Below are positions 3-63,447 of a DNA stretch of 64,000 bases, in pieces (the stretch's first letter is position 1; each line of letters starts with the position of its first letter). Under the pieces are notes generated by a model. That model saw only the letters and a list, made by a program, of their open reading frames with translations, was not told the origin of the DNA and made no database searches. The stretch is from IMG/VR virus record IMGVR_UViG_3300028864_000014, positions 62,001 to 126,000 of that record; one strand, given 5' to 3'. The position numbers were made by a program, and so were the translations under genes.

Positions 3-236
3 AAAAATAATAGTGGTAAAATAGTAGCATCAAAAAAATCAGGAGTTGGTGTTACTTATATGATAAAGTATAATAATATACCTGAGTATTTAAAAAAATA
101 TTTTGTTAGTTTTAACTTTACAAATGACGCAGAACATAAATATATGAGAGCAATAAAAAGACATAACACAATTGAATTCATAGGATCAAAAGAAGAATGT
201 GAAATTAAAATATCAACAAAAAAATATAATTTATAA
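3..236 (+). CDS. 5'-truncated small protein ending in STKKYNL; paralog of 22797..23144
   Basis: Frame 3 is open from the window edge to TAA 234-236 (KNNSGKIVAS...MIKYNNIPEYLKKYF...STKKYNL). It is not in the ORF track. The stop overlaps the next ATG. Confidence 0.75.
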   Translation, partial: KNNSGKIVASKKSGVGVTYMIKYNNIPEYLKKYFVSFNFTNDAEHKYMRAIKRHNTIEFIGSKEECEIKISTKKYNL

Positions 237-679
237 TGATAATACATTTCAAGGAATTTATAACAGAAGGATTTTTAAATATATTCAATAAAAAAAAAGA
301 ATCTATTGAAAATGATAATGAGAAAATTCTCAGAATGATTTATGATAAAGAGCCAGAACTACAAAAGTATAAATTTGAAGTAGATTCTTGGAATAGAAGA
401 GGAGATTTATTACCAAGAGAAAAAAGAAATGATGAAATAATAACCAACCTAAATGGAATTGATGTTATTTTTGATACAGTAACAAAAATTTACGAAATTT
501 CTATTGCGCCTAGATACGATTTTGATTTTTCTCTTAGAATACTCAATTTAATTGATGAAAATTATGACACACTTTCTCATAATTTATACAAATCTAGTAT
601 ATCAACAAAATCAATATTATTCACAGAAATGAGTGAAGAAAGAAAATTTGAATTAGACACAAAAAAATATAATCTATAA
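236..679 (+). CDS. hypothetical protein with CTS-like N-terminus and KYNL C-terminus (candidate internal head protein)
   Basis: Starts MIIHFKEFITE and ends DTKKYNL. Confidence 0.7.
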   Translation: MIIHFKEFITEGFLNIFNKKKESIENDNEKILRMIYDKEPELQKYKFEVDSWNRRGDLLPREKRNDEIITNLNGIDVIFDTVTKIYEISIAPRYDFDFSLRILNLIDENYDTLSHNLYKSSISTKSILFTEMSEERKFELDTKKYNL

Positions 680-680
680 G

Positions 681-1073
681 ATGAAAAAATTTGATGAATT
701 TATAAAAGAAGATGCATTTGCAACTATGGGAAACACAGGAGGAATGGGTGCTATTGTAGCTGCTCAACCAGGAAGTATTCCAGGATCTCAAGGAACTACT
801 GGTTCTGGTGATATTAGTCAGCCTCTTGCTACATATTCTAAACCCGTAGTAAATTTAAAAAGACATAAAAAATCTAAGAAAAATAAAATGAGAAAAGTAG
901 AATCATTTGATATTTTCATGAAAGAAGAAAATGAGATAATAGACAATTTCACTGCAAGATATTATGATAATTATGATGATGAAGAAGAACCAAGTTATGA
1001 AGTAAATATTCAAGATATTGAAGAAAATAATATTAAAAAAATTCAAATGTACGAAAAAGATGAAAATAAATAA
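681..1073 (+). CDS. hypothetical protein with CTS-like N-terminus and possible internal start at 888
   Basis: Starts MKKFDEFIKE, has a Gly-rich linker, and carries a second motif MRKVESFDIFMKE at ATG 888. Confidence 0.7.
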   Translation: MKKFDEFIKEDAFATMGNTGGMGAIVAAQPGSIPGSQGTTGSGDISQPLATYSKPVVNLKRHKKSKKNKMRKVESFDIFMKEENEIIDNFTARYYDNYDDEEEPSYEVNIQDIEENNIKKIQMYEKDENK

Positions 1074-1356
1074 ATTTAGCCAACTAAATGAATCTAATGA
1101 AATACCATATAATAAATCATTAGGATATGATATGTCAATGATAGATTATCTAGCCAAAAGTTTTCAATTATGGACAGATGCATAAGATTTATCACCAAAA
1201 TCCGCTGATGAATATAGCATAGATGAATTAACAGATGTTCAGTATGATTATATAAAAAAATTCATAATTTTATGGGATTCAACTGAAGAATTTGAGAGAG
1301 ATTATAATATAAATGGAATTAAATTAGAACAAAAAGCAAAAAAATTTAATATATAA
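1060..1356 (+). pseudogene. CTS-like/KFNI-tagged small ORF interrupted by an in-frame TAA at 1183-1185
   Basis: Hand translation: MKINKFSQLNE...LWTDA*DLSPK...EQKAKKFNI*. Both terminal family motifs are in one frame. Confidence 0.7.
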
Positions 1357-1367
1357 AATAAGAAATA

Positions 1368-1913
1368 ATGGATAGTATAAGATCAAAATATCAGAAATAT
1401 GGAGTTAAAAATTTCTATGAATGGAATTTTGATCAATATAATAATCCGCATGAGCCAATAATACAAAAATCAATAAAATTTGTAAATGATAATTGGAATA
1501 TAAATTTCAACAAATCATTAGATTTGGCTGCAGGTAAAGGAGAAATTTCTAAAACATTAATAAATCTTGGATATAAAAACATTGATGCTTGTGATGCATA
1601 TTCATGTGATTACTACAAAACAAACGACAACACAAAATGTGAAAAAATATCATTTGATGATATCATAAACGGTTCATTAGATAATAAAAAATATAATATC
1701 ATAATTTGCAGTTTTGCACTACACTTATTAGAGCAATCAAAATTACCAACATTTCTATATAAATTAACTCAAATTAGTAACCAATTACTAATATTATCAC
1801 CTCACAAAAGACCAGAAATAAGAGAAGAATGGGGCTGGAAACTTCAAAATGAAATAGTTATAGAAAAAGTCAGAACTAGACTATTTGATAATATTTTTTC
1901 TAAACAATCTTAA
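1368..1913 (+). CDS. class I SAM-dependent methyltransferase
   Basis: Motif I LDLAAGKG, acidic DACD after strand 2, and an IICSFALHL post-motif. Confidence 0.8.
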   Translation: MDSIRSKYQKYGVKNFYEWNFDQYNNPHEPIIQKSIKFVNDNWNINFNKSLDLAAGKGEISKTLINLGYKNIDACDAYSCDYYKTNDNTKCEKISFDDIINGSLDNKKYNIIICSFALHLLEQSKLPTFLYKLTQISNQLLILSPHKRPEIREEWGWKLQNEIVIEKVRTRLFDNIFSKQS

Positions 1914-1953
1914 TAATTTTTTATATAACATTATAAAATAAAATTATAAAATA

Positions 1954-6353: not shown

Positions 6354-6710
6354 ATGGATATGAAAAAAACAATATTTCTTGATATTGATGGTACATTATT
6401 TAAACACAAAGGTAATTTATCAAATATACTATTTGAAGAGTCTGAAATTTTACCAGGAGTTATTGAAAAAATAAATAAATGGAATTCAGATGGACACAAA
6501 ATAATATTAACTACTGGAAGAACAGAATCTATGAGAAAAAGAACAGATGAACAATTACAAAAAAATGGAATATTTTATGATCAATTAATAATGGGATTAA
6601 CAAGAGGAGAAAGAATAATTATAAATGACAAGAAGCCAGACAATGACATGATTACTGCATCTGCTGTTGAAATAAATAGAAATGTAGGCTTAATAAATAT
6701 TAATATTTGA
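6354..6710 (+). CDS. HAD-superfamily phosphatase-like protein
   Basis: IFLDIDGTL motif I, LTTGR motif II, and YDQLIMG...INDK. Confidence 0.8.
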   Translation: MDMKKTIFLDIDGTLFKHKGNLSNILFEESEILPGVIEKINKWNSDGHKIILTTGRTESMRKRTDEQLQKNGIFYDQLIMGLTRGERIIINDKKPDNDMITASAVEINRNVGLININI

Positions 6711-11695: not shown

Positions 11696-11944
11696 ATGAA
11701 AGTCATAAAAAAAGGTAGCATTGTAACTCAGGATAAAAATTTTTTTTATTATTGGACATGTCCAAAATTTAAATTAGAAGTAATTAAAATTGATGGACGA
11801 ATAGCTTATTTTAAATATGACATTATAATGAAAAATTCAAATAATATAATGCAATCAACTAAAAGCATAAACATTGATTATATAAAAATAGACATATCAG
11901 AAACAAGAAAACAAAAATTATTAAAAATAAATGAGCGAATTTGA
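11696..11944 (+). CDS. hypothetical protein with RxxKL-type tag
   Basis: Likely start ATG 11696; ends ETRKQKLLKINERI. Confidence 0.7.
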   Translation: MKVIKKGSIVTQDKNFFYYWTCPKFKLEVIKIDGRIAYFKYDIIMKNSNNIMQSTKSINIDYIKIDISETRKQKLLKINERI

Positions 11945-12263
11945 TGAAATAAATTCCTTAAAAGAAGGAACAGAAAAAATAGATAAACTAATAAATTTCT
12001 ATAAAGTAACGGTAAAAATTAATGAATGGTTAAATGGGACAAATAAAAATTCTATTATACACTTCAAAGATAGAATTGAATATAAAAGAAATAATCAATA
12101 TCATAGACTAAATGGACCTGCTATTGATTATGAGAATGAAGACAAAAATAAATATTACTATAAGGGAATATTATACAATTCAAAAGATGAATGGTCGAAG
12201 ATTACACAAAAAGAAGTAAGAAAAACAAAACTAAAAAGAATAAAAAAAGAAAGTTCAGAATAA
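11931..12263 (+). CDS. HRxxGPA-motif protein with RxxKL-type tag
   Basis: YHRLNGPAIDY...YYYKG motif common in phage and giant-virus small proteins; ends EVRKTKLKRI. Confidence 0.7.
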   Translation: MSEFDEINSLKEGTEKIDKLINFYKVTVKINEWLNGTNKNSIIHFKDRIEYKRNNQYHRLNGPAIDYENEDKNKYYYKGILYNSKDEWSKITQKEVRKTKLKRIKKESSE

Positions 12264-14648: not shown

Positions 14649-15074
14649 TTAAATATTGAATTTGCCTGCTATTGAATATAACTCAATATCAGATTCTTTC
14701 AAATTACGAATAATTTCAATCGCATCATTATAATATTTAACATCAAATGTAACAGAAAAATAATCCCAATAATTATCAATATGAGATTTATATGGCTCAA
14801 TTATAATATTATTTTCTATCAATTTATTTATAATTAAATCTGAAATAAATTCTATTTTAGGATCAAAATCATATGCAGTGAAACCTATACAAATTTTATT
14901 TTTATTTTTATTAATACTTATATAATTTTGATTTTTTTTATAATCATTACCTTCAAATTTAATTTCATTTTTTGATATGAAACAAGAAAAGTTATTATTT
15001 AATTTAAGACGCAAAGTATTTAATAATTCTGCTGAAAAAAATTTACTTTCGAATATTTTAAAATTTTTAATCAT
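14649..15074 (-). CDS. CTS-like/KFNI-tagged small protein
   Basis: Likely start ATG 15074 (MIKNFKIFES); ends AGKFNI. Confidence 0.75.
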   Translation of the reverse strand: MIKNFKIFESKFFSAELLNTLRLKLNNNFSCFISKNEIKFEGNDYKKNQNYISINKNKNKICIGFTAYDFDPKIEFISDLIINKLIENNIIIEPYKSHIDNYWDYFSVTFDVKYYNDAIEIIRNLKESDIELYSIAGKFNI

Positions 15075-15475: not shown

Positions 15476-15490
15476 TTTTTTTATATATAT
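15476..15490 (+). promoter_or_regulatory. candidate phage late promoter
   Basis: TTTTTTTATATATAT 18 nt upstream of GTG 15509. Confidence 0.55.
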
Positions 15491-15508
15491 AAGAAAAAAC
15501 CAATTTCT

Positions 15509-44302: not shown

Positions 44303-44406
44303 GTTTTTTATAATATATATATAATATCACATAATAATGTGCTATCATTTATATATTTTATATGTTAATTAACACATTTTATATTTTTATTATTATTTTA
44401 TTGTAT

Positions 44407-45802: not shown

Positions 45803-45865
45803 ATGTGTTATATATAAAACTTTTTATATTATTTTTTATATATTATAAAAAATGAATAATATTCA

Positions 45866-49965: not shown

Positions 49966-50679
49966 ATGTCTAAGATAAAAATTAATAATGAGTACGCTGT
50001 AAGAATAAATCATCCAGAACTTGGAGTTTTCTATTTCTCATATTGCGGGCTCAATGAAAAATTTAATCCGTTTGTTTTTACTAAAATTTTATCTAAAGTT
50101 CAAACTTGGAAAACTATAAAATTTGCAGAAAAACAAATAAATATAATTATATCACAGTTGGAATCTAATGAAGGTAAAATTTATTTATCTCTTGGAACAA
50201 ATATAGAGTGTGAATATACATCTAAAATTTTTCAATCCAGAAAAAAATATTATTATCTTATTGACTCGATACAAAATGTTAGATCAAAAATAAATTTAAT
50301 AACAGCAAATAAAAACGTTAACAATTTAAATGTTACATTAATTGAAGATTCAGAAGAAATTTGTAATGTTTATAAAAATATAAAAAATAATTTTTTCATA
50401 AATAAAATTAAAAAACTAGATAATTGTGATGTTGATTTTGATGAAATATTAAAATATTCAAATGATACATTATTATCTATAAATACATACAATGCAATTC
50501 AAAATGAATTAGTACTTAAAGTGAATAACTATCTTGAAGATATCTCATTATATAAAAAAGATATTTCAATCTTAGAAGATTCTAAAACTTATAAAGGATT
50601 ATATTTAGATATTATAGATGCATCTTATGGATTTAGAAGATTAAAATTAAATACACTTAATTTATTACAAGATAATTAA
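49966..50679 (+). CDS. hypothetical protein with RxxKL-type tag
   Basis: Ends FRRLKLNTLNLLQDN. Confidence 0.7.
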   Translation: MSKIKINNEYAVRINHPELGVFYFSYCGLNEKFNPFVFTKILSKVQTWKTIKFAEKQINIIISQLESNEGKIYLSLGTNIECEYTSKIFQSRKKYYYLIDSIQNVRSKINLITANKNVNNLNVTLIEDSEEICNVYKNIKNNFFINKIKKLDNCDVDFDEILKYSNDTLLSINTYNAIQNELVLKVNNYLEDISLYKKDISILEDSKTYKGLYLDIIDASYGFRRLKLNTLNLLQDN

Positions 50680-51899
50680 TTATACACTAATCCTGCCTGC
50701 CAATAAGTTTTTCCAGACACAGTTATATATTCATAGTCACTTAATCCATCAACAGTAATTTCATCTATTTCTGTTTCACTTGAATAATTAACTGGTTCTC
50801 CATTCCATGCTGATATATTAATTAAACTTGAAATTCTATCAATTCTGCAAGCCAAACCTACTTTATCAGAACCAGAAAAACATAATCCTATTATTTTTTT
50901 AGTTCCTGAAAAATCTGCAATTAACGCAGAACCAGAATCTCCATGCCAAATAGGATAATCACACATATCACTTATTGGTTGAGTTGTACCAGTTGTTGCT
51001 ACAAAAACTATAAGATCAGAAAACACAATAGGAGTACTAACTCCTTGAATATTATATGATACTGTTGCTACTGCAGGAGATTGATAAACTAATAATTTAG
51101 TGATATATTCACCTTTAGCTCCTGTTGTTCTACCTGCACTATATAATAATGGATTATATGATATATTACCTGGTTTTAATAAGTTATTTATTTCGTCTGT
51201 TGTTGCAAATGAGTAAGAAGATGATTCTAATCCTTCTTGATTATATGATGTTTTTTTATTTATGTAAGTTTGTCCAGAATAAATTGTTGTCAATGAAACC
51301 TCTGCATAATTATATTCAGTTTGCCTTATAGGATAATATCTTTTAACTATTCCAATTGGAAACATATCATTTGGTGTTTCATGTTTTTGTCCTACTATAT
51401 TACCTTTGATATTATATATTTCTCCATCTATTGATCTTTCTGAACATATAGAAGAATCATCAGAAAATACATGATTATTTGATACTCCAACTAATGAATT
51501 TGTTTCATTATCTATAGCTAAAAATCCCAATGTACCAGAATAATTATACATTGATGTAATATTACTACAAGAAACTCCACATTTCAATGGACGAAATGTA
51601 TTTCTGTTTGATGGGGGAATTGTTTCCCAATCATAAAAAGAATCATCACAAAATTTTTCATAGCTACCAATTACTACATCAGTTTTTATTGTTTCATCAC
51701 CAATAACTAATGAATCTGGTAATAATTGTTCTGGTTTCAATTTATCATTATCAATTTTATCTTTAACAGTAAAAACTATTGATAACTCATCAGATATTAT
51801 TCCACTAGTGGTTTTATACCCATATCCAACTCCAATTATATTATCATCAGTATTTTTATGATACTCTTCTAATTTTTTTAATAACTCTTCTTGATTCAT
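50676..51899 (-). CDS. trypsin-like (S1, Nal1-like) serine protease
   Basis: N-terminal GVGYG...VFTV...TDV; GTLG; SNNHV (His); AGRTTG; GDSGS (Ser); Glu at the expected Asp position. Confidence 0.8.
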   Translation of the reverse strand: MNQEELLKKLEEYHKNTDDNIIGVGYGYKTTSGIISDELSIVFTVKDKIDNDKLKPEQLLPDSLVIGDETIKTDVVIGSYEKFCDDSFYDWETIPPSNRNTFRPLKCGVSCSNITSMYNYSGTLGFLAIDNETNSLVGVSNNHVFSDDSSICSERSIDGEIYNIKGNIVGQKHETPNDMFPIGIVKRYYPIRQTEYNYAEVSLTTIYSGQTYINKKTSYNQEGLESSSYSFATTDEINNLLKPGNISYNPLLYSAGRTTGAKGEYITKLLVYQSPAVATVSYNIQGVSTPIVFSDLIVFVATTGTTQPISDMCDYPIWHGDSGSALIADFSGTKKIIGLCFSGSDKVGLACRIDRISSLINISAWNGEPVNYSSETEIDEITVDGLSDYEYITVSGKTYWQAGLVYN

Positions 51900-54022: not shown

Positions 54023-54427
54023 TTATTCTTCTTTTTCTTCTTCTAAGAATTCAATCTCATCATCATCATCAATATTTATCAATTTTATATTATCATCATA
54101 TACTACAAATTCTTTCAATTCTTCTATCATATCATAAAAATCTGATTCATCTAAACTATCAAGAAGGTCTGCCAATTCATCTTTTGATGGTTCATAATTA
54201 TCTTCATCTTTATATCCATCTAAACTATTTATACCTTGATTATCTAGAATTTCTAATATCTGATCAATAGCATCATGTTTATATTCCCAAAATGATTCAG
54301 TATTGTCATTCACTCTAACTTCCCATTTATTTTCTATTTCTTCATCATTAGTGGTATTTTCTATTTCCTCGTCATCAAGAATATTTTCTTTTATATATTC
54401 AAATTCATTAAATTTTTTAAGAGCCAT
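54023..54427 (-). CDS. highly acidic protein with CTS-like N-terminus
   Basis: Starts MALKKFNEFE; TTTTTATATATAC at 54455-54443. Confidence 0.75.
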   Translation of the reverse strand: MALKKFNEFEYIKENILDDEEIENTTNDEEIENKWEVRVNDNTESFWEYKHDAIDQILEILDNQGINSLDGYKDEDNYEPSKDELADLLDSLDESDFYDMIEELKEFVVYDDNIKLINIDDDDEIEFLEEEKEE

Positions 54428-54503
54428 AATTTTTCTTTTTTTGTATATATAAAAATATAACTAACTATTTTTTATTTTCTTCTATTATATCATTTTTTAT
54501 TTG

Positions 54504-54538: not shown

Positions 54539-55045
54539 ATGAAAAAATTTGAAACCGTATTTAAGACTTGGATAGGGAAAAATACGAATTCACAAATCAA
54601 AGCAATTGATAAAATTTCATCTGAAACAGGAATTGACGCCGAAGATTGGTTCTTTAATAATTTCTTACGTTTACAAACTGGTGATTTTAGTGGAACTGAT
54701 TTTTTAGAGGTACTACTTGAAAATTATTTATGTAATTTGACTCATAAATTTGAAAAAATTGTAGGAGAATATTTAGAAAGCACAGGAACTAGTTTTTATG
54801 GTGAGCCAATATATGATATAGATATTACATTGGATTATGATTATAAAAAAAATTGTATAGTTATTGACGAACAATATGGAAATAAATCTGATATTGAAAA
54901 AATAATAAAATCAATATCTCTTGATAATAAAATACTATTAACTAAAAATAAAATATTTACATACGTCATTAATGAAACAAAATTAAATATATTCTCAGAA
55001 AAAGAAGCAAGAATATTAAAATTGAAACAATTGAATGAAATATAA
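54539..55045 (+). CDS. hypothetical protein with RxxKL tag
   Basis: Ends EARILKLKQLNEI. Confidence 0.75.
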   Translation: MKKFETVFKTWIGKNTNSQIKAIDKISSETGIDAEDWFFNNFLRLQTGDFSGTDFLEVLLENYLCNLTHKFEKIVGEYLESTGTSFYGEPIYDIDITLDYDYKKNCIVIDEQYGNKSDIEKIIKSISLDNKILLTKNKIFTYVINETKLNIFSEKEARILKLKQLNEI

Positions 55046-55256
55046 AATTGGCGATATTATCATTTTTAATAAATCTAAAAAATCAAAATCAATCATAATA
55101 GAAATTATTCATCAACATTTATTTCATTATTATAGATTTAGATTTATTGATGAAAATAATACTCACATTATGAGTTGTGAAAATGTAGATAATTCATCAG
55201 AATTCTATATTAATTATATAAGAAAAGAAAAATTAAAAAATATAAATGAAATATAA
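55035..55256 (+). CDS. MKYKIGDI (SH3/KOW-like) cassette protein with RxxKL tag
   Basis: MKYKIGDII...IRKEKLKNINEI. Confidence 0.75.
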   Translation: MKYKIGDIIIFNKSKKSKSIIIEIIHQHLFHYYRFRFIDENNTHIMSCENVDNSSEFYINYIRKEKLKNINEI

Positions 55257-55471
55257 AATAGGTGATATTATCATTTTTGAAAGTTTCAAAACAAAAATAG
55301 TAAGAATTATTAATAGTAATAATTGTTATGAAATACATACATTTTTTAATAATCAAACATACACACAAGTTGTTCAATCTGAATATGTAGATAGATGCTC
55401 AAAAATAGATATTAAATCTATGAGAAAAGAAAAATTAAAAAATTTAAATGAAATATAAAATAGGTGATATT
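55221..55471 (+). repeat. two 49-bp direct repeats spanning gene junctions (one mismatch)
   Basis: AGAAAAGAAAAATTAAAAAAT(A/T)TAAATGAAATATAAAATAGGTGATATT at 55221-55269 and 55423-55471. Confidence 0.9.
55246..55458 (+). CDS. MKYKIGDI cassette protein with RxxKL tag
   Basis: MKYKIGDII...MRKEKLKNLNEI. Confidence 0.75.
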   Translation: MKYKIGDIIIFESFKTKIVRIINSNNCYEIHTFFNNQTYTQVVQSEYVDRCSKIDIKSMRKEKLKNLNEI

Positions 55472-55669
55472 GTGGTTGGCGAAATTTTAAAAATTAAAAT
55501 AGTAAGTATTTTAAATAATAAATATGAATATCGTTTAATGTGCTGTAAAAATCCAAAAGTCACAAATTGGACTACTGAATCAATAGACAATAAAACAGAA
55601 TTAGATAAACAATATTTAAGAAAAGAAAAATTAAAAAAATTATATGATACTTCAGCAATGGCTAAATAA
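55448..55669 (+). CDS. MKYKIGDI cassette protein with RxxKL tag
   Basis: MKYKIGDIV...LRKEKLKKLYD. Confidence 0.75.
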   Translation: MKYKIGDIVVGEILKIKIVSILNNKYEYRLMCCKNPKVTNWTTESIDNKTELDKQYLRKEKLKKLYDTSAMAK

Positions 55670-56225
55670 TCCTGATTTTTTGGATAAAAATCAGTTTGAA
55701 AAAAGAAAAGTATTAAAAAGAAGCATATTATCAGATAAATATTGTTTAGTAGGTAAAACATATATATGCTTTGATAATGAAAACTATTGCTCAAATATGA
55801 GATTTTATAGTTCTAATAGCTATTGTAATTTGACTATAGGTAAATCATATGAAATATTAGATCATAAAATTGGTAAGGTAAGAATACTAAATGATAGCAA
55901 CAAAAAAATTTGGACTACAATTAATAGATTTATATATTCAATAAAATATGAAAGAAAAGATAAATTAAAAAAAATATCTAAATCAGATGATGAAATTTTT
56001 ATTGACATATCAGAAAAAAAATTGATTTGTGTTTTATGCGGACAAGAATGGGGAATAGAAAATAAATTCACAAATACATGTGAAAATGTTGAATGTAATG
56101 GCTTTTGTACATGGGGATATTATCCAATGATACCAGAAAGTTTCACAATTGATGATAATGGATTTTGGCATTTAATACCTTTTCCTAAGGATTTAAAAGA
56201 ATTATATAATTATAAAATTAAATAA
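55644..56225 (+). CDS. hypothetical protein with internal RxxKL tag and C-terminal Cys-rich (Zn-binding-like) domain
   Basis: Internal ERKDKLKKI, then CVLCG...CENVECNGFC. Confidence 0.7.
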   Translation: MILQQWLNNPDFLDKNQFEKRKVLKRSILSDKYCLVGKTYICFDNENYCSNMRFYSSNSYCNLTIGKSYEILDHKIGKVRILNDSNKKIWTTINRFIYSIKYERKDKLKKISKSDDEIFIDISEKKLICVLCGQEWGIENKFTNTCENVECNGFCTWGYYPMIPESFTIDDNGFWHLIPFPKDLKELYNYKIK

Positions 56226-56227
56226 AT

Positions 56228-56617
56228 ATGTTAGATAAAAAATCAACTCAACGTATAAAAGACTATGTTATCAGCACAGGTAAAAAGATAACAGTAAAAA
56301 GTGGTAGATGTAGATATAATTTTAGATGTCAAATGAATGCAGTAAATGATGCATTATGTAGTGGTCAAACAACAGTAGGAATGTGTGTTTGTATTAATAG
56401 TGATAATTGTTTTATTCATTTTGTTAATATTTCAAAAAATAACACATTCATTGATAATACATTGGGACAATGGTCAGTTAAATATAAATATTATTTAGTA
56501 AAAATTATTGAAAAAAAAGATTTTTTAAATATAAATGATATTTTTCTTAAATATAGAAAAGAATTGCATCAAAAATTACCTTTATACTTGAGAATGGTAA
56601 ATACAATTGAATTTTAA
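56228..56617 (+). CDS. hypothetical protein with possible Cys-His-Asp triad
   Basis: FRCQMNA, FIHFVN and FIDNT in papain/transglutaminase-like order. Confidence 0.4.
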   Translation: MLDKKSTQRIKDYVISTGKKITVKSGRCRYNFRCQMNAVNDALCSGQTTVGMCVCINSDNCFIHFVNISKNNTFIDNTLGQWSVKYKYYLVKIIEKKDFLNINDIFLKYRKELHQKLPLYLRMVNTIEF

Positions 56618-56881
56618 ATGATAATTGATAAAGGTTGGGGATATTGGGATTTGAAAAATTCCACAAGACTTGATGATATTGCATATTATTCATTTGTTCA
56701 AGATTATGTGAAGGACTATAAAGATTCAATATCATTTATGTCAAATATGGATTATGAACCACCTGATCAAACTTGGTTTTATTATCAAAGAAATAAAAAT
56801 AGTCATTATTCTTATCATTACAATAGTGCAAATAATTTTTTAAGAAAAGAAAAACTTGTTAAATTAAAAGAAATACAATAA
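56618..56881 (+). CDS. small RxxKL-tagged protein, paralog of 42284..42508
   Basis: GYWDLKNSTRLDDIAY...LRKEKLVKL. Confidence 0.7.
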   Translation: MIIDKGWGYWDLKNSTRLDDIAYYSFVQDYVKDYKDSISFMSNMDYEPPDQTWFYYQRNKNSHYSYHYNSANNFLRKEKLVKLKEIQ

Positions 56882-56884
56882 ATA

Positions 56885-57562
56885 ATGAAAAAGAAAATAG
56901 TAATATTCACTGGTGCTGGAATAAGTGCAGAAAGCGGAATTCAAACTTTCAGGGATTCTGACGGACTTTGGGAGCAATATGATGTAAAAGACGTTGCAAC
57001 TATTGATGGTTGGAGAAAAGATAGACAATTAGTTTTAAAATTTTATAATGAAAGACATAAACAATTAGATACTGTAGAACCTAATTCAGCTCATTACTTT
57101 CTTGCTGAATTGGAAAAAAAGTATGATGTTCAGATAGTTACTCAAAATGTCGACGATCTCCATGAGAGAGCAGGAAGTACAAATGTTCTACATCTTCATG
57201 GACAATTAACAAAGATGAGAGCATTTAATAATTTTACTGTTTATGATTGGCCAAAAGATTTTGACATACAAACAGATAGTGTGGATGAAAATGGCGATAC
57301 ATTAAGACCACATATTGTTTGGTTTGGAGAAGCTGTTCCAAATATGGGTAAAGCTGAAAAAATAACAAAAGAAGCAGATATACTTATTGTAATTGGAACA
57401 TCATTACAAGTTTATCCTGCAGCAAATTTATTATATAAAGCAAATTTTAGAGCACCTATATATTATATTGATCCTTCTGATTCTGATATTGGTATAGATA
57501 TTAAAAATTTTACTCATATAAAAGAAACAGCAACAGAAGGAGTTAAAAAATTAAAATTGTGA
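56885..57562 (+). CDS. cobB: Sir2-family NAD-dependent protein deacylase
   Basis: GAGISAESGIQTFR, TQNVDDLHE, LHLHG, RPHIVWFGE and GTSLQVYPAA. Confidence 0.95.
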   Translation: MKKKIVIFTGAGISAESGIQTFRDSDGLWEQYDVKDVATIDGWRKDRQLVLKFYNERHKQLDTVEPNSAHYFLAELEKKYDVQIVTQNVDDLHERAGSTNVLHLHGQLTKMRAFNNFTVYDWPKDFDIQTDSVDENGDTLRPHIVWFGEAVPNMGKAEKITKEADILIVIGTSLQVYPAANLLYKANFRAPIYYIDPSDSDIGIDIKNFTHIKETATEGVKKLKL

Positions 57563-57879
57563 TGATAGAAAATAAAAGTGAAAAATACGGAAAATATTAT
57601 GGAGAGTTAGTTGATTTTGACTACACTGCAAATATGATATATTCAGATTGGAGCGAGAGAGAGACTTCAATGTTTTGTGAACAACTAGAAGAATACGGAG
57701 TAACAGAAATAATTTTTGACGTTGAAGATGGGGAAAATGAAAATAAATACTCATCAACATTATATATTGAAACAACAGATGAAACAGATTACAAAAAACT
57801 TATGATGTTAATTTTATCAAAACATCCTGATGAGTTTTCAGAAGAAACAAATAATCACTTTAGATTTTGGGTTGATTAA
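57559..57879 (+). CDS. acidic hypothetical protein
   Basis: 106 aa ORF overlapping the cobB stop. Confidence 0.65.
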   Translation: MMIENKSEKYGKYYGELVDFDYTANMIYSDWSERETSMFCEQLEEYGVTEIIFDVEDGENENKYSSTLYIETTDETDYKKLMMLILSKHPDEFSEETNNHFRFWVD

Positions 57880-57909
57880 AAACATTAAACAAATTAAAAA
57901 TATAATATT

Positions 57910-58350
57910 ATGCCAAGTGTTACAGAAAAATTAGAAGAATATTTAAAATTTTTAAAAACTCCTGAGGGAGAAGAAAGCATTCTTGAATTTCAAAAAGTAA
58001 TTCAATTGGAAGAAGATATCAAAAATATAAACATTGAAAGAGTAAAAAAAATGTTCAATGATCAAGAAACTTTTGATTCTTTAGTCAATAGAATAATAAG
58101 AAAAAATGGAGAAGAATGGAGGGACAAATGTTACAAAAATGGTTGTACCCCATATCCAACTCAACTATTATACTCGTTGTTTGATTTAGCAGAAAAAGAA
58201 GGAACTGAAATAACAGAATCTATTGATGATTTTACAAGTCATTTTCCGTCTGACATCTGTGAATATAACGGTTGGCAATTTGCTTTGACATATGGTCAAG
58301 GTACATGTAGTAGTATATACTACAATAAAAAATTAATGTATAGAGATTGA
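57910..58350 (+). CDS. hypothetical protein
   Basis: 146 aa ORF. Confidence 0.65.
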   Translation: MPSVTEKLEEYLKFLKTPEGEESILEFQKVIQLEEDIKNINIERVKKMFNDQETFDSLVNRIIRKNGEEWRDKCYKNGCTPYPTQLLYSLFDLAEKEGTEITESIDDFTSHFPSDICEYNGWQFALTYGQGTCSSIYYNKKLMYRD

Positions 58351-58604
58351 ATTCAATTAAAACAGTAAAATCAAGATATAGTATAACTACAATTTCACCA
58401 AATTTTTATAGTAATTTGTCATTAAGTGGCAATACAAATGATATTATTTCTGGTTCAACTGGATTATTAGAGCAAGGTTATATATTTGTTCCTTATATAA
58501 TGGCTACAACAACATCAATTATTACTGAATCAAGAGAACGTAAGATAAACAGACTAAGAGAAGAAAGAGTAGAAAAACTTAAAAAATTAGGATGGAATGA
58601 CTGA
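58347..58604 (+). CDS. small protein with gp23-like G-Y-x-x-x-P-Y motif and RxxKL tag
   Basis: LLEQGYIFVPYIMAT versus T4 gp23 DAGIYYAPYVALT; ERVEKLKKL. Confidence 0.55.
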   Translation: MNSIKTVKSRYSITTISPNFYSNLSLSGNTNDIISGSTGLLEQGYIFVPYIMATTTSIITESRERKINRLREERVEKLKKLGWND

Positions 58605-58875
58605 TAAAAAATATAAACAAGGAGATGAAGTTGTATGTATTAATAATGATGGAGGTTATGATAAATATTTAACAATTGGAAAAAAATATAAAATTCATTA
58701 TATTTATAAAGGAAAATTAACCAATTTAGATCATTTTAGGATAAAATCTGACAAAATAAATTCATTTTTTATAAGTCCATTAGGAATAATTTTTTTATCA
58801 CCAAATGAGTTTAAAATTAAGAAAAGAAAAGAAAAATTAGAAAAAATCAATAAATTAATTTTTAATGATATTTAA
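58597..58875 (+). CDS. GDEVVCI (SH3-like) protein with RxxKL tag
   Basis: QGDEVVCINN...LTIGKKY...RKEKLEKI. Confidence 0.75.
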   Translation: MTDKKYKQGDEVVCINNDGGYDKYLTIGKKYKIHYIYKGKLTNLDHFRIKSDKINSFFISPLGIIFLSPNEFKIKKRKEKLEKINKLIFNDI

Positions 58876-59113
58876 TCAAGGAGATGAAGTTGTTTGTATT
58901 CAAAATGTTGGTTATACTGATTTTTTAACAATTAGCAAATCATATAAAGTTTTACTTTCCTACTATGGAAGTGTAACAGAAACTGAACATATACGTGTTC
59001 AGAAAGATGATAAAAATGGTCATGTTGATATATTTAGTAGTAGATTTATATCTATCAAAGAATTCAAAAAAATAAAAAGAAAAGAAAAACTAAATATATT
59101 AAATCTAATATAA
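58865..59113 (+). CDS. GDEVVCI (SH3-like) protein with RxxKL tag
   Basis: QGDEVVCIQN...LTISKSY...RKEKLNIL. Confidence 0.75.
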   Translation: MIFNQGDEVVCIQNVGYTDFLTISKSYKVLLSYYGSVTETEHIRVQKDDKNGHVDIFSSRFISIKEFKKIKRKEKLNILNLI

Positions 59114-59141
59114 CATATAAATAATAAAAATAAAATAGGAT

Positions 59142-59363
59142 ATGAAAATTTTAAGAAAAAAAGACACTTTTAAGAAAGTACCTGACGCAAGCATTAATGA
59201 TGTTGTAGCTATCAAATCTTATATTGAACAAGGATGGAAGCATTGTTCAAAAAAAGAATATAAAGATTTTTTCAAAACTGCAGTTTCTGAGAAATTAGTT
59301 GAAAAGAAAATTGAAAAAGAAGAAATTAAAGAAAAAAAGAAAGAAAAGAAGCACGGCAAATGA
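59142..59363 (+). CDS. basic hypothetical protein
   Basis: 73 aa, Lys/Glu-rich. Confidence 0.6.
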   Translation: MKILRKKDTFKKVPDASINDVVAIKSYIEQGWKHCSKKEYKDFFKTAVSEKLVEKKIEKEEIKEKKKEKKHGK

Positions 59364-59794
59364 TTTTAGATATAATCAAATATGATGATTCTAACTCAGG
59401 AAAATTAAGAAAACTAAATGTAAATGTAAAAAAGGAAAATCCTTTTTTGCTTTCACTTATTAAAAATATGTTTGAAACTCTTAATTATCACAAATTTGAA
59501 TTTGGGTTATCTGCTCCACAAGTTGGACATAACTTAAATTTATTTGTTATTAATAATCCTGATTTAAAAGAAGTATTTATTAATCCAGAAATATATTTAG
59601 AAGGACTTTTTATTCAAAACAAAGAAAGATGTTTAAGCTTACCAAATTTAGAATTTCCTATAAATAGGAGATCAATTGTTAAGATTAAATATTATGATAT
59701 AAATTGGAATTATAAAATGTCTTCGTTTAAAGATTTAAATGCCATAGCTATTCAACATCAATTTGATCATATTAACGGAAAATTAATTATTTGA
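59360..59794 (+). CDS. def: peptide deformylase-like protein with degenerate active site
   Basis: GLSAPQVG, VFINPEI, ERCLS (canonical EGCLS) and QHQFDHING (canonical QHEMDHL.G). Confidence 0.85.
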   Translation: MILDIIKYDDSNSGKLRKLNVNVKKENPFLLSLIKNMFETLNYHKFEFGLSAPQVGHNLNLFVINNPDLKEVFINPEIYLEGLFIQNKERCLSLPNLEFPINRRSIVKIKYYDINWNYKMSSFKDLNAIAIQHQFDHINGKLII

Positions 59795-60177
59795 TGAATA
59801 TATTTAATAGAAAAAAAAGGGAATTAAAAAGGGAACTAAAATACAATGAACTGAACAAATTATTCAGGATTAAACATGGTATAATTTGTAATTGGAGGAT
59901 TAAAAAATATACTTTGCATCCAACTACAGTTGAAGGACTTGTTTTTGATGAAAAGTTTAATTCATTTTTTTTGAGAGAATATGGAATATTTCCACATTCC
60001 TTTAATGAGTTTGCTTGTATTAACTATTCCTTTGATCCAAAATTTGATAATTTTCCAGTTGATAAATTACAGGAATTATATAATAAAATTGAGTCTGTTT
60101 TTCCTGATCCATTTATTAAAATTAATAGATTAAAAAAATTAAAAAATATTAATTCTGTTAAATATGAAGAACGGTGA
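59791..60177 (+). CDS. hypothetical protein with RxxKL-type tag
   Basis: Ends INRLKKLKNINS. Confidence 0.7.
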   Translation: MMNIFNRKKRELKRELKYNELNKLFRIKHGIICNWRIKKYTLHPTTVEGLVFDEKFNSFFLREYGIFPHSFNEFACINYSFDPKFDNFPVDKLQELYNKIESVFPDPFIKINRLKKLKNINSVKYEER

Positions 60178-60394
60178 TAAAATTACTTATATTAGTAACG
60201 ATATTTGTGTTTTTGATAAATATAAAACATATACTATTATTAATATACACAATGATATTATAACATATGTGAGTTATCTTGATAATTATAAAAAGTTATG
60301 GTATATAGGTTGTAGTTATACTATGAATAAATTCATAACATATAATCAATATAGAAAATTAAAATTAAATAAAATTAATGAAAAAATATGTTAG
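60164..60394 (+). CDS. SH3-like small protein with RxxKL tag
   Basis: MKNGDKITYI...YRKLKLNKI. Confidence 0.7.
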   Translation: MKNGDKITYISNDICVFDKYKTYTIINIHNDIITYVSYLDNYKKLWYIGCSYTMNKFITYNQYRKLKLNKINEKIC

Positions 60395-60570
60395 TAAAAG
60401 AATTAATAGAAAAAATAGAAGAATTAAGAGTAATATATCCTAATATTGATGATATTGAAATTGGACCACTTTTTAATGGTGATTTAGTGATGATGATTAG
60501 TGATTTGACAATAGAAGAAGGCTCAGGATGGGAAACTGACGATGCAATTGGCATTATTTGGAATTGTTAA
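60388..60570 (+). CDS. hypothetical protein
   Basis: 60 aa acidic ORF (MLVKELIEKIEEL). Confidence 0.6.
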   Translation: MLVKELIEKIEELRVIYPNIDDIEIGPLFNGDLVMMISDLTIEEGSGWETDDAIGIIWNC

Positions 60571-60597
60571 GTTTTTATAAAAAATAATAAATATTAA

Positions 60598-60840
60598 ATG
60601 TTAGAAGAAATCATAAATAACTATCCAGATGAAGGAATTTTATCTGCTGATGGATTGGATGATGCAGTAATTGGATTAGAAATGAATTCAATGAGGTTAA
60701 TATATTCAGTATCTAAATGTATTGAAATTTTTATCAATGATGGAATGACAGAAGAAGAAGCATTAGAATTCTTTGAATTTAATACAGCAGGATCTTATAT
60801 GGGTGAACACACTCCAATATGGTGCTACGATGATTTTTAA
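60598..60840 (+). CDS. conserved phage hypothetical protein
   Basis: ADGLDDAVIG...YS..KC...GMTEEEALEFFEFN..GSYMGEHTPI is a family I recognise from environmental phages. Confidence 0.75.
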   Translation: MLEEIINNYPDEGILSADGLDDAVIGLEMNSMRLIYSVSKCIEIFINDGMTEEEALEFFEFNTAGSYMGEHTPIWCYDDF

Positions 60841-60900
60841 TTGATATAAAAATAAATAATTTTTTTATATCAATTATTTTCATTATATTTGTAAAAAAAT

Positions 60901-61101
60901 ATGAAAGATAAAAAATCAGATGAAATATATTCAAATTGGGTCAAAGAATCAGGAATAAAAGATTTAACTGGTAACCAATCAAAATTTGTCAAAATGATTA
61001 TATCAAATAGAAAAATTATCTGTGAAATCGGAAGTTTTAATAAAGTTTTTGTTAGCATTTATAAATATTTGAAAAATAATCGTGAAAAATTAGAAGATTA
61101 A
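60901..61101 (+). CDS. hypothetical protein
   Basis: 66 aa ORF. Confidence 0.55.
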   Translation: MKDKKSDEIYSNWVKESGIKDLTGNQSKFVKMIISNRKIICEIGSFNKVFVSIYKYLKNNREKLED

Positions 61102-61103
61102 AT

Positions 61104-61361
61104 ATGAAATCAATACTTTACAAAAAAGGTGAAAAATTTGTTTGTATAGATAATACATCTAGATATACTGGAGTAGAATTAGGCTATTCTTCTTTGACGT
61201 TATTGAAAATTGGCGGTGTTTACACATTTCGTGATATTAATAGTTATGGCGAAATGAATTTTTTGGAACTACGCGGATATAGTTTCAGAAAGCAAAGGTT
61301 TGTGAAATATTCAGAGTTAAGAAAGATAAAATTAGAAAAATTAAATACTATAAACATATAA
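61104..61361 (+). CDS. SH3-like small protein with RxxKL tag
   Basis: KKGEKFVCIDN...LRKIKLEKL. Confidence 0.75.
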   Translation: MKSILYKKGEKFVCIDNTSRYTGVELGYSSLTLLKIGGVYTFRDINSYGEMNFLELRGYSFRKQRFVKYSELRKIKLEKLNTINI

Positions 61362-61363
61362 TC

Positions 61364-62251
61364 ATGAGTCTAAAAGCATATGACGGTATGATGACCAGAA
61401 ATGGTTTAGCATACATACAAGAAGAAATCTTAAAAAGAATTGATAGATTTGAAGATGCATCACAAAATGAATTAGCAAAATGTTATGCTAAAGATATTAT
61501 ATTACATGTAGATGAAAAATGTGACATTATTCATCAAATGGAATATTTATCAATTAATGATAGTGAAGAATTAAAAAATAAAATAAAAGAAATTAGTATA
61601 AAAGAAGATACTACTTTGATGTCTTATTTATTTCAATCAGGTAAAATATTATCAAAAAGTCAATATAAAAATGATTTTATGGTTGATCTTAGTTTATCAA
61701 TTGATTGTAGAGATGATAAAATACTAATTTTTCCAAATATAAATGTAGGCGAGCATAGAACAATCCTTTTAGAATTTCTAAATGATTGGTATTGTCAAAA
61801 CCAATCTGATCCAGATGAAAATGTAAAAGAAGATGAATGGGATGAAAGAGAAAAAGATTGGTATGTATTTAATGAACATAAAGGATTATCAATGAAGATT
61901 ATGATATTTGATACAAATAATTATTCTAAAAATTTAAATGAACATTTTAGAGGTGAAATATTATATCAAAAAATACTCGAAAATATTCCTTCAGATGATA
62001 TTAGAAAAAGGAAAATAGTAACTAATATTTTAATTAGTGAGAAATTAAAAGATAATGATGATTATTCAACTGTTTGGAATATATTGGGAGAGTTAAAGAA
62101 AGATGACAACTCAGAAATAACTGAATATATAAACTCACATGATATTCAATTATTTAAAATTGATAAAGAATTTCTTGATACTGAATTATTAAAACCTAAA
62201 ACAGAACTTGATGAGTATATAAAAACTCATAATATTGAATTAAAAAAATAA
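61364..62251 (+). CDS. hypothetical protein
   Basis: 295 aa ORF. Confidence 0.7.
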   Translation: MSLKAYDGMMTRNGLAYIQEEILKRIDRFEDASQNELAKCYAKDIILHVDEKCDIIHQMEYLSINDSEELKNKIKEISIKEDTTLMSYLFQSGKILSKSQYKNDFMVDLSLSIDCRDDKILIFPNINVGEHRTILLEFLNDWYCQNQSDPDENVKEDEWDEREKDWYVFNEHKGLSMKIMIFDTNNYSKNLNEHFRGEILYQKILENIPSDDIRKRKIVTNILISEKLKDNDDYSTVWNILGELKKDDNSEITEYINSHDIQLFKIDKEFLDTELLKPKTELDEYIKTHNIELKK

Positions 62252-62257
62252 CAATTT

Positions 62258-62294
62258 AAATCCATCTATTTAAGATGGATTTTTTTATATATAA
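62258..62294 (+). terminator. intrinsic terminator whose T-run is also the start of a late-promoter-like motif
   Basis: AAATCCATCT-ATTTA-AGATGGATTT, continuing into TTTTTTTATATATAA (62280-62294) before 62318. Confidence 0.7.
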
Positions 62295-62317
62295 TAATAA
62301 ATAAAAAATAATTTATT

Positions 62318-62647
62318 ATGACAGTATATAGTTTTGATGAATATTATGGCAAGAAATATCAAGTAGATAGATATTATGATAATATGATGAGAGTAGTTGA
62401 TGATTATGTAAATACTAATGATGAATTTAGAAAAAACCACAAAGTTCAAAATTCACCTTATTTTGTTATAAAATCAGATAGTATACATAAAAGTTCACTT
62501 AAACCAGGAGGATATAATATAAATTACACTTTGAAAAAAAATTATCAAAAGGGAACAATAAATATAACTGATGAAGAATATAATGATTTAGTTGAATATA
62601 TGAAAGATACAGAATTATATAAATCTACAAAAAAATTCAATTTATAA
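62318..62647 (+). CDS. CTS-like/KFNL-tagged small protein
   Basis: Starts MTVYSFDEY; ends STKKFNL. Confidence 0.7.
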   Translation: MTVYSFDEYYGKKYQVDRYYDNMMRVVDDYVNTNDEFRKNHKVQNSPYFVIKSDSIHKSSLKPGGYNINYTLKKNYQKGTINITDEEYNDLVEYMKDTELYKSTKKFNL

Positions 62648-63447
62648 TGAGCAAAAAAGTCAAAGATTGGAATTCATTTATTTTAGAACAACAGAGTATA
62701 GAAAACTCTATATATTCAATATTTGATATTGATGATAATTTACTTATCATGAATACTCCTTTACACTTTCAACATTTTGAAAATGGTAAATGGATAAATA
62801 AAGATATATCAATTCAAGATTTTTCTAAAATAAGACTTGAATATCCAGATAATTATATTGATAATAATGAATGGAAATCAGACACTAAATATACATTTTC
62901 TGAATTTGGAGACAACGGTCCAAGATTAGATAATTCACTTGTTGATGATATTAAAAAATCAATAAAGAATAAAAATTTTGGTCCATCATGGGAGTCATTT
63001 TTAACAACTCTAAAAGAAGGTAGATTATTTGCTATCATTACCACAAGAGGACATGAACCTAATACTATACATTCATCAGTAAGATATATAATAGATAATG
63101 TATTAGACATAGATGATAAAAATATAATGATAACAAATATAGAAAAATATAATAAATTATTCAAATTTGAATCAACTGATAAAATAGAAAATTATTTAGA
63201 CTGCTGTTATTTTATTGGATTAATGTCTCAAGCATTCAAAGATGAGTTTTATTTTACTCCAACAATGAAAACAAGACATTTAGCTATACAAGATGCAACT
63301 AACAAATTTTCAAATTACGTTAAAGAAATTTCTCCTGGTACAATAGATTCATTCATTAGTAATGAGAAATCATTAGACTTTCCTGAATTTTATAGCATTT
63401 CTAATTCTGTCACCAATAAAACAGAACAAGTAAAAGTTAAAATATAA
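62647..63447 (+). CDS. HAD-like protein with CTS-like N-terminus
   Basis: Starts MSKKVKDWNSFILE; IFDIDDNL (motif I) and AIITTRGH (motif II). Confidence 0.65.
   Translation: MSKKVKDWNSFILEQQSIENSIYSIFDIDDNLLIMNTPLHFQHFENGKWINKDISIQDFSKIRLEYPDNYIDNNEWKSDTKYTFSEFGDNGPRLDNSLVDDIKKSIKNKNFGPSWESFLTTLKEGRLFAIITTRGHEPNTIHSSVRYIIDNVLDIDDKNIMITNIEKYNKLFKFESTDKIENYLDCCYFIGLMSQAFKDEFYFTPTMKTRHLAIQDATNKFSNYVKEISPGTIDSFISNEKSLDFPEFYSISNSVTNKTEQVKVKI

Follow-up and report, generated by a model that had tools for sequence, protein, structure and literature searches.

A T4-like N-terminal leader recurs across the proteins of a huge phage and its relatives and is a candidate capsid-targeting tag

Introduction

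The capsid-targeting sequence (CTS) of phage T4 and the propeptides of giant-phage head proteins are already known. In T4, Glu65 of gp23 (E65/A66) ends the 65-residue propeptide that is removed by gp21, and proteases of this kind in T4, phiKZ, 201phi2-1 and SPN3US cut C-terminal to Glu (PMC5694885). Here we describe a short N-terminal leader in a stretch of 64,000 nucleotides (positions 62,001 to 126,000 of IMG/VR virus record IMGVR_UViG_3300028864_000014), hereafter the window, where a first-pass annotation had listed 22 N-termini and compared them with MKTYQEFIAE, the start of T4 IPII and IPIII; the T4 sequences confirm that start. About 17-20 of the ~100 genes of the window carry the leader, which spans 9-13 residues and consists of M, one to four mostly basic or aliphatic residues, a hydrophobic residue, two further residues, F or Y, and then E or I/L/M-x-E. 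We read it, with some reservation, as a tag of the T4 type for capsid targeting and cleavage.

The window has a guanine-plus-cytosine (GC) content of 23%, is densely coding on both strands and contains no tRNA genes. It belongs to a contig of 235,318 bp, and DNA identical to it is present in peat and fen metagenomes. Among named genomes, those closest to it are the huge 'Mahaphage' ones described by Al-Shayeb et al., chiefly LR756501 at 735 kb (PMC7162821). A 628-residue protein and the SbcCD protein of the window show 42-44% identity to LR756501. We take the source of the window to be a huge phage of the 'Mahaphage' group.

Enrichment of the Leader at Protein N-Termini

A regular expression written post hoc matches 18 of 99 N-termini in the window, against 2.9 expected from internal windows; the enrichment at N-termini is 4-8-fold over internal windows and ~3-4-fold over windows starting at an internal Met. 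To avoid circularity, we trained a position-specific scoring matrix (PSSM) of 10 columns on LR756501 N-termini only, which replaces a harsher first version that under-scored true leaders. At a threshold of at least 6 bits this matrix finds 17 of 100 window proteins (2.7 expected), 7 of 29 in L011, a 66%-identical relative (1.4 expected), and 54 of 335 in a held-out 258 kb of LR756501 (6.2 expected); at 5 bits or more the window yields 22 of 100 (4.2 expected). PTm1, an AT-rich jumbo phage of Bacteroidota (29% GC) used as a control, gives 3 of 67 against 1.1 expected, which is no clear enrichment. The recurrence noticed in the first-pass annotation thus exceeds what the controls yield. Over the whole LR756501 genome, scores of at least 8 bits are reached by 137 of 1010 proteins (14%), which are spread over its full length.

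When the same matrix is applied to 119 T4 proteins, the top four are gp61.1, gp24.2 (which starts MEQYDLYENES), IPII and IPIII, at 11-14 bits; fewer than 0.1% of null windows score as high as 10 bits. The start of T4 Alt, MELITELFDED, has the same form by eye, but with aliphatic residues.

The form of the leader varies between phages. On a phage contig of 40.6% GC, nine genes within a ten-gene stretch adjoining a Baseplate_J gene start with M[KR]HLKTYxLFE or a close variant, and on a contig of 27% GC five genes adjoining a T4 neck-protein gene start with MLSYK[QE][YF]. Comparison of these starts indicates that the leader consensus is specific to each lineage, and the arrays in the phage of 40.6% GC show that base composition does not explain the motif. 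Paralogous leaders within the window differ at synonymous sites, which argues for selection on the peptide rather than on the DNA.

Head Genes and a Repeat-Bearing Protease in Relatives

LR756501 encodes at 72-78 kb three adjacent homologs of the T4 gp20 portal, gp21 protease and gp23 capsid protein, found with phmmer in the complete proteome (E 1e-29 for gp20, 5e-7 for gp23 and 0.004 for gp21). In 477 kb of this genome, searches with T4 head proteins gave only terminase and sheath, the head module lying in the other 258 kb, and 10 large genes around the terminase proved in a PHROG scan to include replication genes and no capsid genes. The protease homolog, a protein of 807 residues (73913-76336), aligns to gp21 over its first ~180 residues, where GEFDHPD and VSSRAAG face GELNHPP and VSSRGLG of T4, motifs that hold the catalytic His and Ser. 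Scanning IMG/VR with the LR756501 capsid protein yielded 68 loci, ~60 of which carry a protease gene encoding 780-864 residues just upstream. In one such locus, L066 (24% GC, peat), Pfam recognizes Portal_T4 (7e-63), Gp23 (5e-24) and, in the protease, Peptidase_S80 (26 bits, cut-off 23.4).

The protease of these phages is fused to a scaffold-like region of ~600 residues that comprises 10-16 tandem 14-residue repeats, xYSEYIAENLDxxI, and an acidic Pro/Glu-rich stretch. Residues 262-480 of the LR756501 protein hold ~16 such repeats, each with Y-[ST]-E-Y-I-A-E-[NH], and the low-GC lineage has 11-12 repeats of YSEYIAENLDxSIx (L066, 7525-9897; L071, 7552-9897); the architecture is kept in ~60 IMG/VR loci, the low-GC lineage included. 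The repeat YSEYIAE is nearly the T4 sequence YQEFIAE. When all LR756501 proteins are searched internally with the leader matrix, the protease-scaffold fusion ranks first by a wide margin, and the protease's own N-terminus (MIKNVLIVEN, MKPVLIVEH) is leader-shaped. The match between scaffold repeats and putative cargo leaders would suggest like-with-like recruitment.

Small genes that combine the leader with the C-terminal tail described below lie between portal and protease-scaffold in L066, L071 and L076, the position of the T4 core genes 67 and 68, and such genes also occur near the head genes of L068 and L096.

Endonuclease-like genes are found in or beside the head module of the relatives (L066 5732-7369 (-) and 918-1445; L071 4536-6125 (-)), including DUF7487 with treble-clef zinc-finger and REase domains and a TnsA-like type. 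One in L066 sits between the core genes and the protease. These genes are probably mobile.

A Copy of the Capsid Protein N-Arm

The top-scoring leader of the window (13.3 bits) opens the 130-residue protein encoded at 681-1073 (+), which starts MKKFDEFIKE and then D. Behind this leader the protein duplicates the N-arm of the capsid protein (ATMGNTGGMGAIVAAQP..GSGDI), and a linker rich in Lys then leads to another leader-like unit within the chain (MRKVESFDIFMKE, nucleotide 888). The sequence after the leader reads ATMGNTGGMGAVVAAQPSSTPG..GSGDIGQ and aligns to residues 41-93 of the LR756501 major capsid protein (MCP; hhalign probability 95.7%, E 1e-8), and the resemblance to the L066 capsid protein is by eye more obvious still. 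The leader's IKE and the D that follows fall opposite MNE and N, directly before the N-arm of the capsid protein; by this placement, MNE in the capsid protein of the clade would be the end of a propeptide and the site of a maturation cut. The family has 39 metagenomic homologs, the longer of which contain up to three leader-like units after Lys-rich linkers, a layout whose sequence resembles a polyprotein cut at each unit.

The leader region also matches that of T4 gp61.1 (hhalign probability 93%). Residues 2-38 of gp61.1 (KTFKEFIKE-DMVAGDSGGNPENISIGTTSGAVVNKGP) align in turn to residues 57-93 of gp23 (QAFGSFLTE-AEIGGDHGYNATNIAAGQTSGAVTQIGP) with 46% identity (E 3e-9), and since this alignment runs across Glu65, the leader motif in T4 corresponds to the sequence around a known gp21 cut site. 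As far as these alignments indicate, the leader in the Mahaphage clade is placed homologously to the gp23 cut context. Like the window protein, gp61.1 (54 residues; gene 61.1 at L026 18966-19130 (-), listed alongside L015 8946-9365) joins a CTS-like leader, MKTFKEFIKED, to a duplicate of the capsid N-arm and finishes in a Lys-rich stretch; unlike it, gp61.1 is a single unit and copies T4 gp23 rather than a Mahaphage-type capsid protein. We found no report in the literature of gp61.1 as a head protein. Because it is a copy of the gp23 cut site and N-arm with a CTS-like leader, it is a candidate for an overlooked head protein of T4.

The Leader as a Separable Label

Homologs and structure models show the leader, as observed in alignments and as modelled, to be a label separable from the folded body. 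Gene 22797-23144 (+) encodes 115 residues with leader MKHLRLFEN (8.3 bits), an SH3-like body and the tail NTNKFNI. In its family, A4 (12 members, drawn from the window and its relatives), no column is invariant except M1, K2 and two in the C-terminal tail. Pairs of members share on average 62% identity over the leader, 21% over the body and 57% over the tail. The AlphaFold2 model built from the family alignment has an overall predicted local distance difference test (pLDDT) score of 78, with residues 1-12 below 50 and devoid of secondary structure, a confident beta-rich body at residues 13-97 (75-89) and a C-terminal helix at 98-113. A search for structural relatives of this barrel family gave no significant match.

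The protein encoded at 15085-15438 (-) (117 residues) joins the leader MIIEFKIYEN (5.3 bits) to a predicted, minimal ADP-ribosyltransferase (ART)-fold domain with an invariant HGT, which bears out the ART-like label of the first-pass annotation through Pfam family matches and Foldseek. The protein itself matches ART-PolyVal with E 2.6e-5 (score 25.4 bits, cut-off 31.2; the match spans positions 8-62 of the 140 in the model). Among 35 homologs HGT is invariant and a Tyr near-invariant, 17 match ART-PolyVal and 3 match PARP, and the best Foldseek matches are Tpt1/KptA, Rhs ART toxins and PARP16 (probability up to 1.0, best E 3.8e-3). The domain has only ~95 residues, and no catalytic Glu was identified in it. 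In the AlphaFold2 model (pLDDT 85) residues 1-10 are below 50 and unstructured. A library of 1.84 billion proteins contains 71 homologs: those with an N-terminal extension have mostly leader-like starts (MKYLKLFES, MRFKTFYLKEN, MLSYKQYLLEN and others), and those starting at the HGT motif have no leader. In multidomain homologs with a leader, it stands at the extreme N-terminus and the domain lies 120-250 residues downstream, the linker between leader and ART-like domain being variable. Likewise, a CoaE-type (dephospho-CoA-kinase-family) protein of LR756501 carries a 13-residue leader ahead of its P-loop.

The idea that 15085-15438 and the next open reading frame (ORF) form one frameshifted ART gene was dropped because the downstream ORF has no ART match. 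A protein of 266 residues from another locus (P0087; L102 590-1390) combines a leader, MQYIKTFESFLNE, with a GNAT acetyltransferase domain and an ART-like domain.

The other cargo labels first proposed, GNAT-, HAD- and HiPIP-like, found no Pfam support at E<0.1 among motif-bearing proteins of the window, and the HAD-like window gene (6354-6710) has no leader. Pfam and PHROG searches with ~20 motif proteins gave almost no matches, so their function is not readable from families. Only two leader proteins of the window have a detectable ortholog in LR756501, the 681-1073 family and the protein at 62647-63447, and the conserved core proteins are without a leader.

Leader-Bearing Proteins of the Window

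All 22 N-termini quoted by the first-pass annotation are present at their positions, but the one at 888 is an internal in-frame Met of ORF 681-1073 and no ORF start. The 21 ORF starts exist, with the qualifications that 24948 is a GTG, 15074 is the third in-frame Met and 1060 opens a 41-residue overlapping ORF. Most fit the leader, 16 scoring at least 5 bits and three 4.5-4.9 bits, whereas those at 62318 and 14626 fit poorly. Nor are all the bodies unrelated as supposed: BLASTP among the ~100 called genes finds four paralog pairs (22797/23141, 24263/24610, 25487/25921 and 43793/44445) and no other relationships.

At the left end, 236-679 (+) encodes 147 residues with leader MIIHFKEFITE and tail TKKYNL (6.1 bits); it is preceded by a 58-residue ORF, 60-236 (+), that has only the tail, ending STKKYNL. 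The 41-residue ORF at 1060-1185 (+) (MKINKFSQLNE, 6.4 bits) is a doubtful gene that overlaps the end of 681-1073 in another frame. The 300-residue product of 13724-14626 (-), a gene upstream of tail-fibre-like genes on the same strand, starts MKYLKCYE, a weak fit outside the 34 best PSSM scores (below ~2.5 bits). It is followed by 14649-15074 (-), 141 residues with leader MIKNFKIFES and tail AGKFNI (8.6 bits).

A cluster between 22797 and 26343 holds most of the paralogs. Downstream of 22797-23144 lies its paralog 23141-23482 (+) (113 residues, leader MKHLKLYES, tail DTKKFNI, 5.5 bits; BLASTP E 4e-5), then 23771-24244 (-) (157 residues, leader MKKIVDYGEYIKE, 5.8 bits), whose ortholog in L011 keeps the leader. 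The next two are 24263-24607 (-) (114 residues, leader MIVEKFNIF, tail STNKFNI, 7.3 bits) and its paralog 24610-24948 (-) (112 residues, GTG start, leader (M)IIERFNIF, tail TTNKFNL, 6.9 bits; BLASTP E 4e-23). Gene 24964-25395 (-) encodes 143 residues with the tail STMKFNL and no leader, which shows that the two signals are separable. The cluster ends with 25487-25924 (-) (145 residues, leader MITNFKVFEN, tail NANKFNL, 6.7 bits), whose homologs at 51-81% identity retain both leader and tail, and its paralog 25921-26343 (-) (140 residues, leader MITEFKIFEN, tail AKKFNI, 10.2 bits).

Three N-termini are marginal: MMNNIIVFEN at 31147-31407 (-) (86 residues, 4.5 bits), MNYLKTFEK at 41194-41583 (+) (129 residues, 4.9 bits) and MKNIKTFET at 45332-45802 (-) (156 residues, 4.6 bits). 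Leader MRKLKTFNEN is shared by 43793-44302 (-) (169 residues, 11.8 bits) and its paralog 44445-44705 (-) (86 residues, 8.5 bits); the body of the former is internally duplicated, its residues 94-165 matching residues 13-84 of this neighbour. An acidic protein of 134 residues is encoded at 54023-54427 (-) with leader MALKKFNEFE (10.4 bits). At the right end, the 109-residue product of 62318-62647 (+) has the tail STKKFNL and a poorly fitting N-terminus, MTVYSFDEYY (-0.5 bits), and 62647-63447 (+) encodes 266 residues with leader MSKKVKDWNSFILE (6.1 bits); the LR756501 ortholog of the latter (35% identity) has a different, still leader-like N-terminus, MIKKYEDYSKNE.

C-Terminal Tails

Ten window proteins and ORF 60-236 end in [ST]-x-x-K-[FY]-N-[IL]-stop behind an acidic amphipathic helix. 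The tail motif keeps to the stop codon of the gene that carries it and not to the next start, since the spacer to the next gene varies. A leader is also present on 8 of the 10 tail proteins, an association with an odds ratio of 22 that is inflated by paralogy. Across the MCP loci, most K[FY]N[IL] tails occur in the low-GC sub-lineage, and L011 carries a tandem run of six leader-plus-tail genes at the place of two in the window. As a guess, the tail could be a second contact with the core or shell.

Among 699 LR756501 proteins (258-735 kb) none has the K[FY]N[IL] tail, and 64 contain DPYGEE, usually followed by x-W, a motif with no occurrence in the window. Most of these [LIF]-D-P-Y-G-E-E-x-W sites lie either ~10 residues short of the C-terminus or directly behind the leader, and the motif also recurs between the domains of larger proteins. 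They could represent a second kind of cleavage or docking site (G-E-E).

About 12 other small window proteins (54539-61361, 11696-12263 and 42284-42508; compare L013 23594-27753) end with R-K-x-K-L-x-x-[LI]-N-x-I, and an SH3-like segment, K-x-G-D-x-V, opens many of these. A comparable tandem array, ending [KR]R[TS]xLIDxxL, adjoins the SbcCD gene of LR756501.

Genomic Context

Other genes of the window encode a ClpB-like ATPase (32277-34811), an SbcCD fusion, a collagen-repeat tail-fibre-like protein, an S1-domain protein and a chymotrypsin/3C-like protease. The last is a protein of 407 residues (50676-51899 (-)) with a match to PHROG 20754 'protease' (E 3e-18) and weak PDB matches to picornain 3C-type proteases; BLASTP found no homolog of it in LR756501 at E 1e-4. 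N-terminal sequences suggest that the window also encodes DnaJ (1954-2961), a thymidine kinase, Sir2 and a NusG-like protein. Another contig that shares this DNA has a peptide deformylase annotated on it, and a ClpP gene lies ~5 kb beyond the right end of the window, in locus L001. PDB sequence searches with three large window proteins gave no match for two and weak matches for the third, and an ESM Atlas search with the 628-residue protein returned lectin-like leads only. A 1429-residue window protein was considered as a homolog of the 1450-residue protein that adjoins a leader array in L103, and this was rejected, the two not being homologous.

An element of the TATATATA type is present 10-60 nucleotides upstream of most operon-initial genes of the window on either strand (intergenic examples at 15482-15491, 26349-26358, 44314-44323, 45809-45816 and 54444-54451) and is likely a promoter element. 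We rejected it as a marker of a shared expression class of motif genes: it stands upstream of motif and non-motif genes alike and so defines no such class.

In LR756501 the T4 gp17-like large terminase is found in three far-apart pieces (609226-611493, 623865-624410 and 699854-701026), which may reflect a split gene or an extra copy.

Interpretation

The leader is probably a T4-type capsid-targeting and cleavage tag, as the first-pass annotation had proposed; the head module, the scaffold repeats, the capsid protein alignment and the disorder and modularity of the leader all point this way, and what falls short is that the head module is seen in relatives of the window and not within it. We envisage that the unstructured leader would bind a scaffolding core formed by the protease-scaffold fusion with its 10-16 near-identical YSEYIAE copies, and that this binding would lead to the tagged protein being enclosed as the Gp23-type shell forms. 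The gp21/S80-type protease would then cut behind the leader Glu, and the mature proteins would be retained in the head and pass into the host along with the DNA. The set delivered in this way would include the ART-fold domain, small SH3-like proteins, the capsid N-arm copy and many orphans. On about half of the leader proteins in the lineage of the window, the C-terminal helix ending K-[FY]-N-[IL] may provide a second contact with core or shell.

Several points weigh against this proposal. The number of candidates, 14-18% of the proteome or ~140-180 proteins in LR756501, is beyond any known case, T4 having about five such proteins and phiKZ and SPN3US processing 8-19 head proteins. The leader genes are scattered across the LR756501 genome, the mature parts are mostly acidic and not obviously suited to packed DNA, and the CoaE-type protein is an unexpected cargo. 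Neither the window nor the flanks covered by the analysis contain the head module. All that ties the window to the L066/L071 lineage is its GC content, the sample series and the K[FY]N[IL] tail that they share, a tail with no known T4 counterpart. The assignment of the protease is affected by the weak phmmer match to gp21 (E 0.004) and by a Peptidase_S77 score on the L066 protein of 23.8 bits, under the cut-off of 27. The PSSM misses both the gp23 cut site and the Alt leader of T4, so those links rest on alignment and inspection. Finally, we infer the binding, cleavage, packaging and injection of leader proteins by analogy with IPI-III and Alt of T4. The unprecedented number, the unseen head genes of the window, the odd kinase cargo and the reliance on analogy for these steps limit our confidence in the capsid-tag reading.

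Other explanations share parts of the evidence. The leader may bring proteins into the prohead core for cutting by the head protease, most of them serving as core or scaffold mass or as size-determining filler that is degraded and expelled rather than injected. This would suit the polyprotein-like 681-1073 family, with its short Gly/Ser-rich units each behind a Lys-rich linker and leader-like site (compare T4 gp67 and gp68, which are cut into peptides), its copy of the MCP N-arm, the leader-plus-tail genes at the gp67/68 position and the very large number of candidates. We nevertheless think it unlikely, because several bodies are confident globular folds, an ART-fold enzyme domain included, and because bodies that turn over fast while their leaders are retained fit host-interaction cargo such as the T4 internal proteins. 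We consider it quite unlikely that the leader addresses some other phage system, such as a cytoplasmic protease, a chaperone or unfoldase, or sorting to a phage-made compartment, its likeness to T4 and to the scaffold being a shared preference only. A tag on 14-18% of a proteome would be more natural for sorting or turnover, the C-terminal tags are lineage-specific (K[FY]N[IL] in the window, DPYGEExW in LR756501), and the window with its right flank does encode a ClpB-like protein, DnaJ, a 3C-like protease and ClpP. However, no link between those genes and the motif was found, LR756501 has the motif and yet no BLASTP homolog of the 3C-like protease at E 1e-4, and the strongest links of the motif are to the head protease-scaffold protein and the cleavage region of the MCP.

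The remaining explanations dispense with a signal altogether. If the shared ends were inherited structural parts of one fast-evolving family of small paralogs, the four paralog pairs and tandem arrays, the similar size of proteins with both ends (109-147 residues) and the paralogy-inflated association of leader and tail in the window (8 of 10, odds ratio 22) would follow. Such an origin is very unlikely given that the leader occurs on different folds and sizes (ART fold, SH3-like, capsid N-arm copy, CoaE kinase and proteins of 300-500 residues), is disordered in models, is present or absent among homologs of one domain and recurs within the scaffold protein. A by-product of AT-rich codon usage, or of messenger RNA features for Shine-Dalgarno-free starts, is scarcely credible. 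At 23% GC the residues K, I, N, F and E are indeed the commonest, and no Shine-Dalgarno sequences are visible upstream of window genes, but internal windows hold 4-8 times and internal-Met windows ~3-4 times fewer matches, PTm1 is AT-rich and Shine-Dalgarno-poor and shows no clear enrichment, the motif occurs in T4 and, in arrays, in a phage of 40.6% GC, and paralogous leaders show synonymous differences. An artefact of composition or translation is largely refuted, being essentially excluded by these controls.

A broader version of the capsid-tag reading, possible but doubtful, is that the largest phages use a massively expanded T4-type addressing system, in which a repeat-scaffold protease would recruit more than 100 leader-tagged proteins, a C-terminal tag would refine their sorting and the capsid would deliver a pre-made effector proteome. 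We found no literature on short T4-like leaders borne by 14-18% of the proteins of the largest phages, on a protease-scaffold fusion of tandem leader-like repeats or on lineage-specific C-terminal tags, and none of relevance to the leader motif, DPYGEE or Mahaphage head biology. Should the leaders function as they do in T4, the packaged and injected proteins of uncultured huge phages would be recognizable in metagenomes by a simple sequence rule. It would supply hundreds of candidate first-strike proteins, for instance for anti-defence and host takeover, almost all of them orphans, together with a testable picture of how the core of a giant capsid is organized. Such a natural tag, being short and having variants specific to each lineage, could make it possible to package proteins in the T4 manner in other phage chassis, and the comparison highlights gp61.1 in T4, a model phage, as a head protein candidate that has been passed over.

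Comparison with Known Systems

The closest parallel is the CTS of T4, carried by IPI, IPII, IPIII and Alt. Both it and the leader are ~10 residues long, stand at the extreme N-terminus and end hydrophobic-hydrophobic-x-Glu (MKTYQEFIAE in T4, MKKFDEFIKE in the window), and both occur on unrelated, fast-evolving proteins, one of which in the window has a predicted ART fold, as does the packaged Alt; relatives of the window phage moreover possess head genes of the Gp20, Gp21 and Gp23 types. The clade differs from T4 in that its leader is found on 14-18% of proteins rather than a handful, has a lineage-specific consensus and often takes the short form F/Y-E. Its protease is fused to a scaffold of tandem motif repeats, and many of its proteins bear a C-terminal tail. 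We found no cultured member or virion proteome of the clade in the literature.

With phiKZ, 201phi2-1 and SPN3US the clade shares the character of huge myovirus-like phages with many internal head proteins and a gp21-related protease of the S80 type, which in those phages cuts after Glu, at S/A/G-x-E (PMC5694885). Their propeptides, however, are mostly 80-160 residues long and have no common short N-terminal motif. They process 8-19 proteins, and the portal and capsid proteins of the clade are, unlike theirs, recognizably of the T4 type by sequence.

Encapsulin cargo-loading peptides, which are short and terminal, attach cargo proteins of unrelated kinds to the inside of a shell with the HK97 fold. 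They offer a possible analogy, without sequence similarity, for the K[FY]N[IL] tail.

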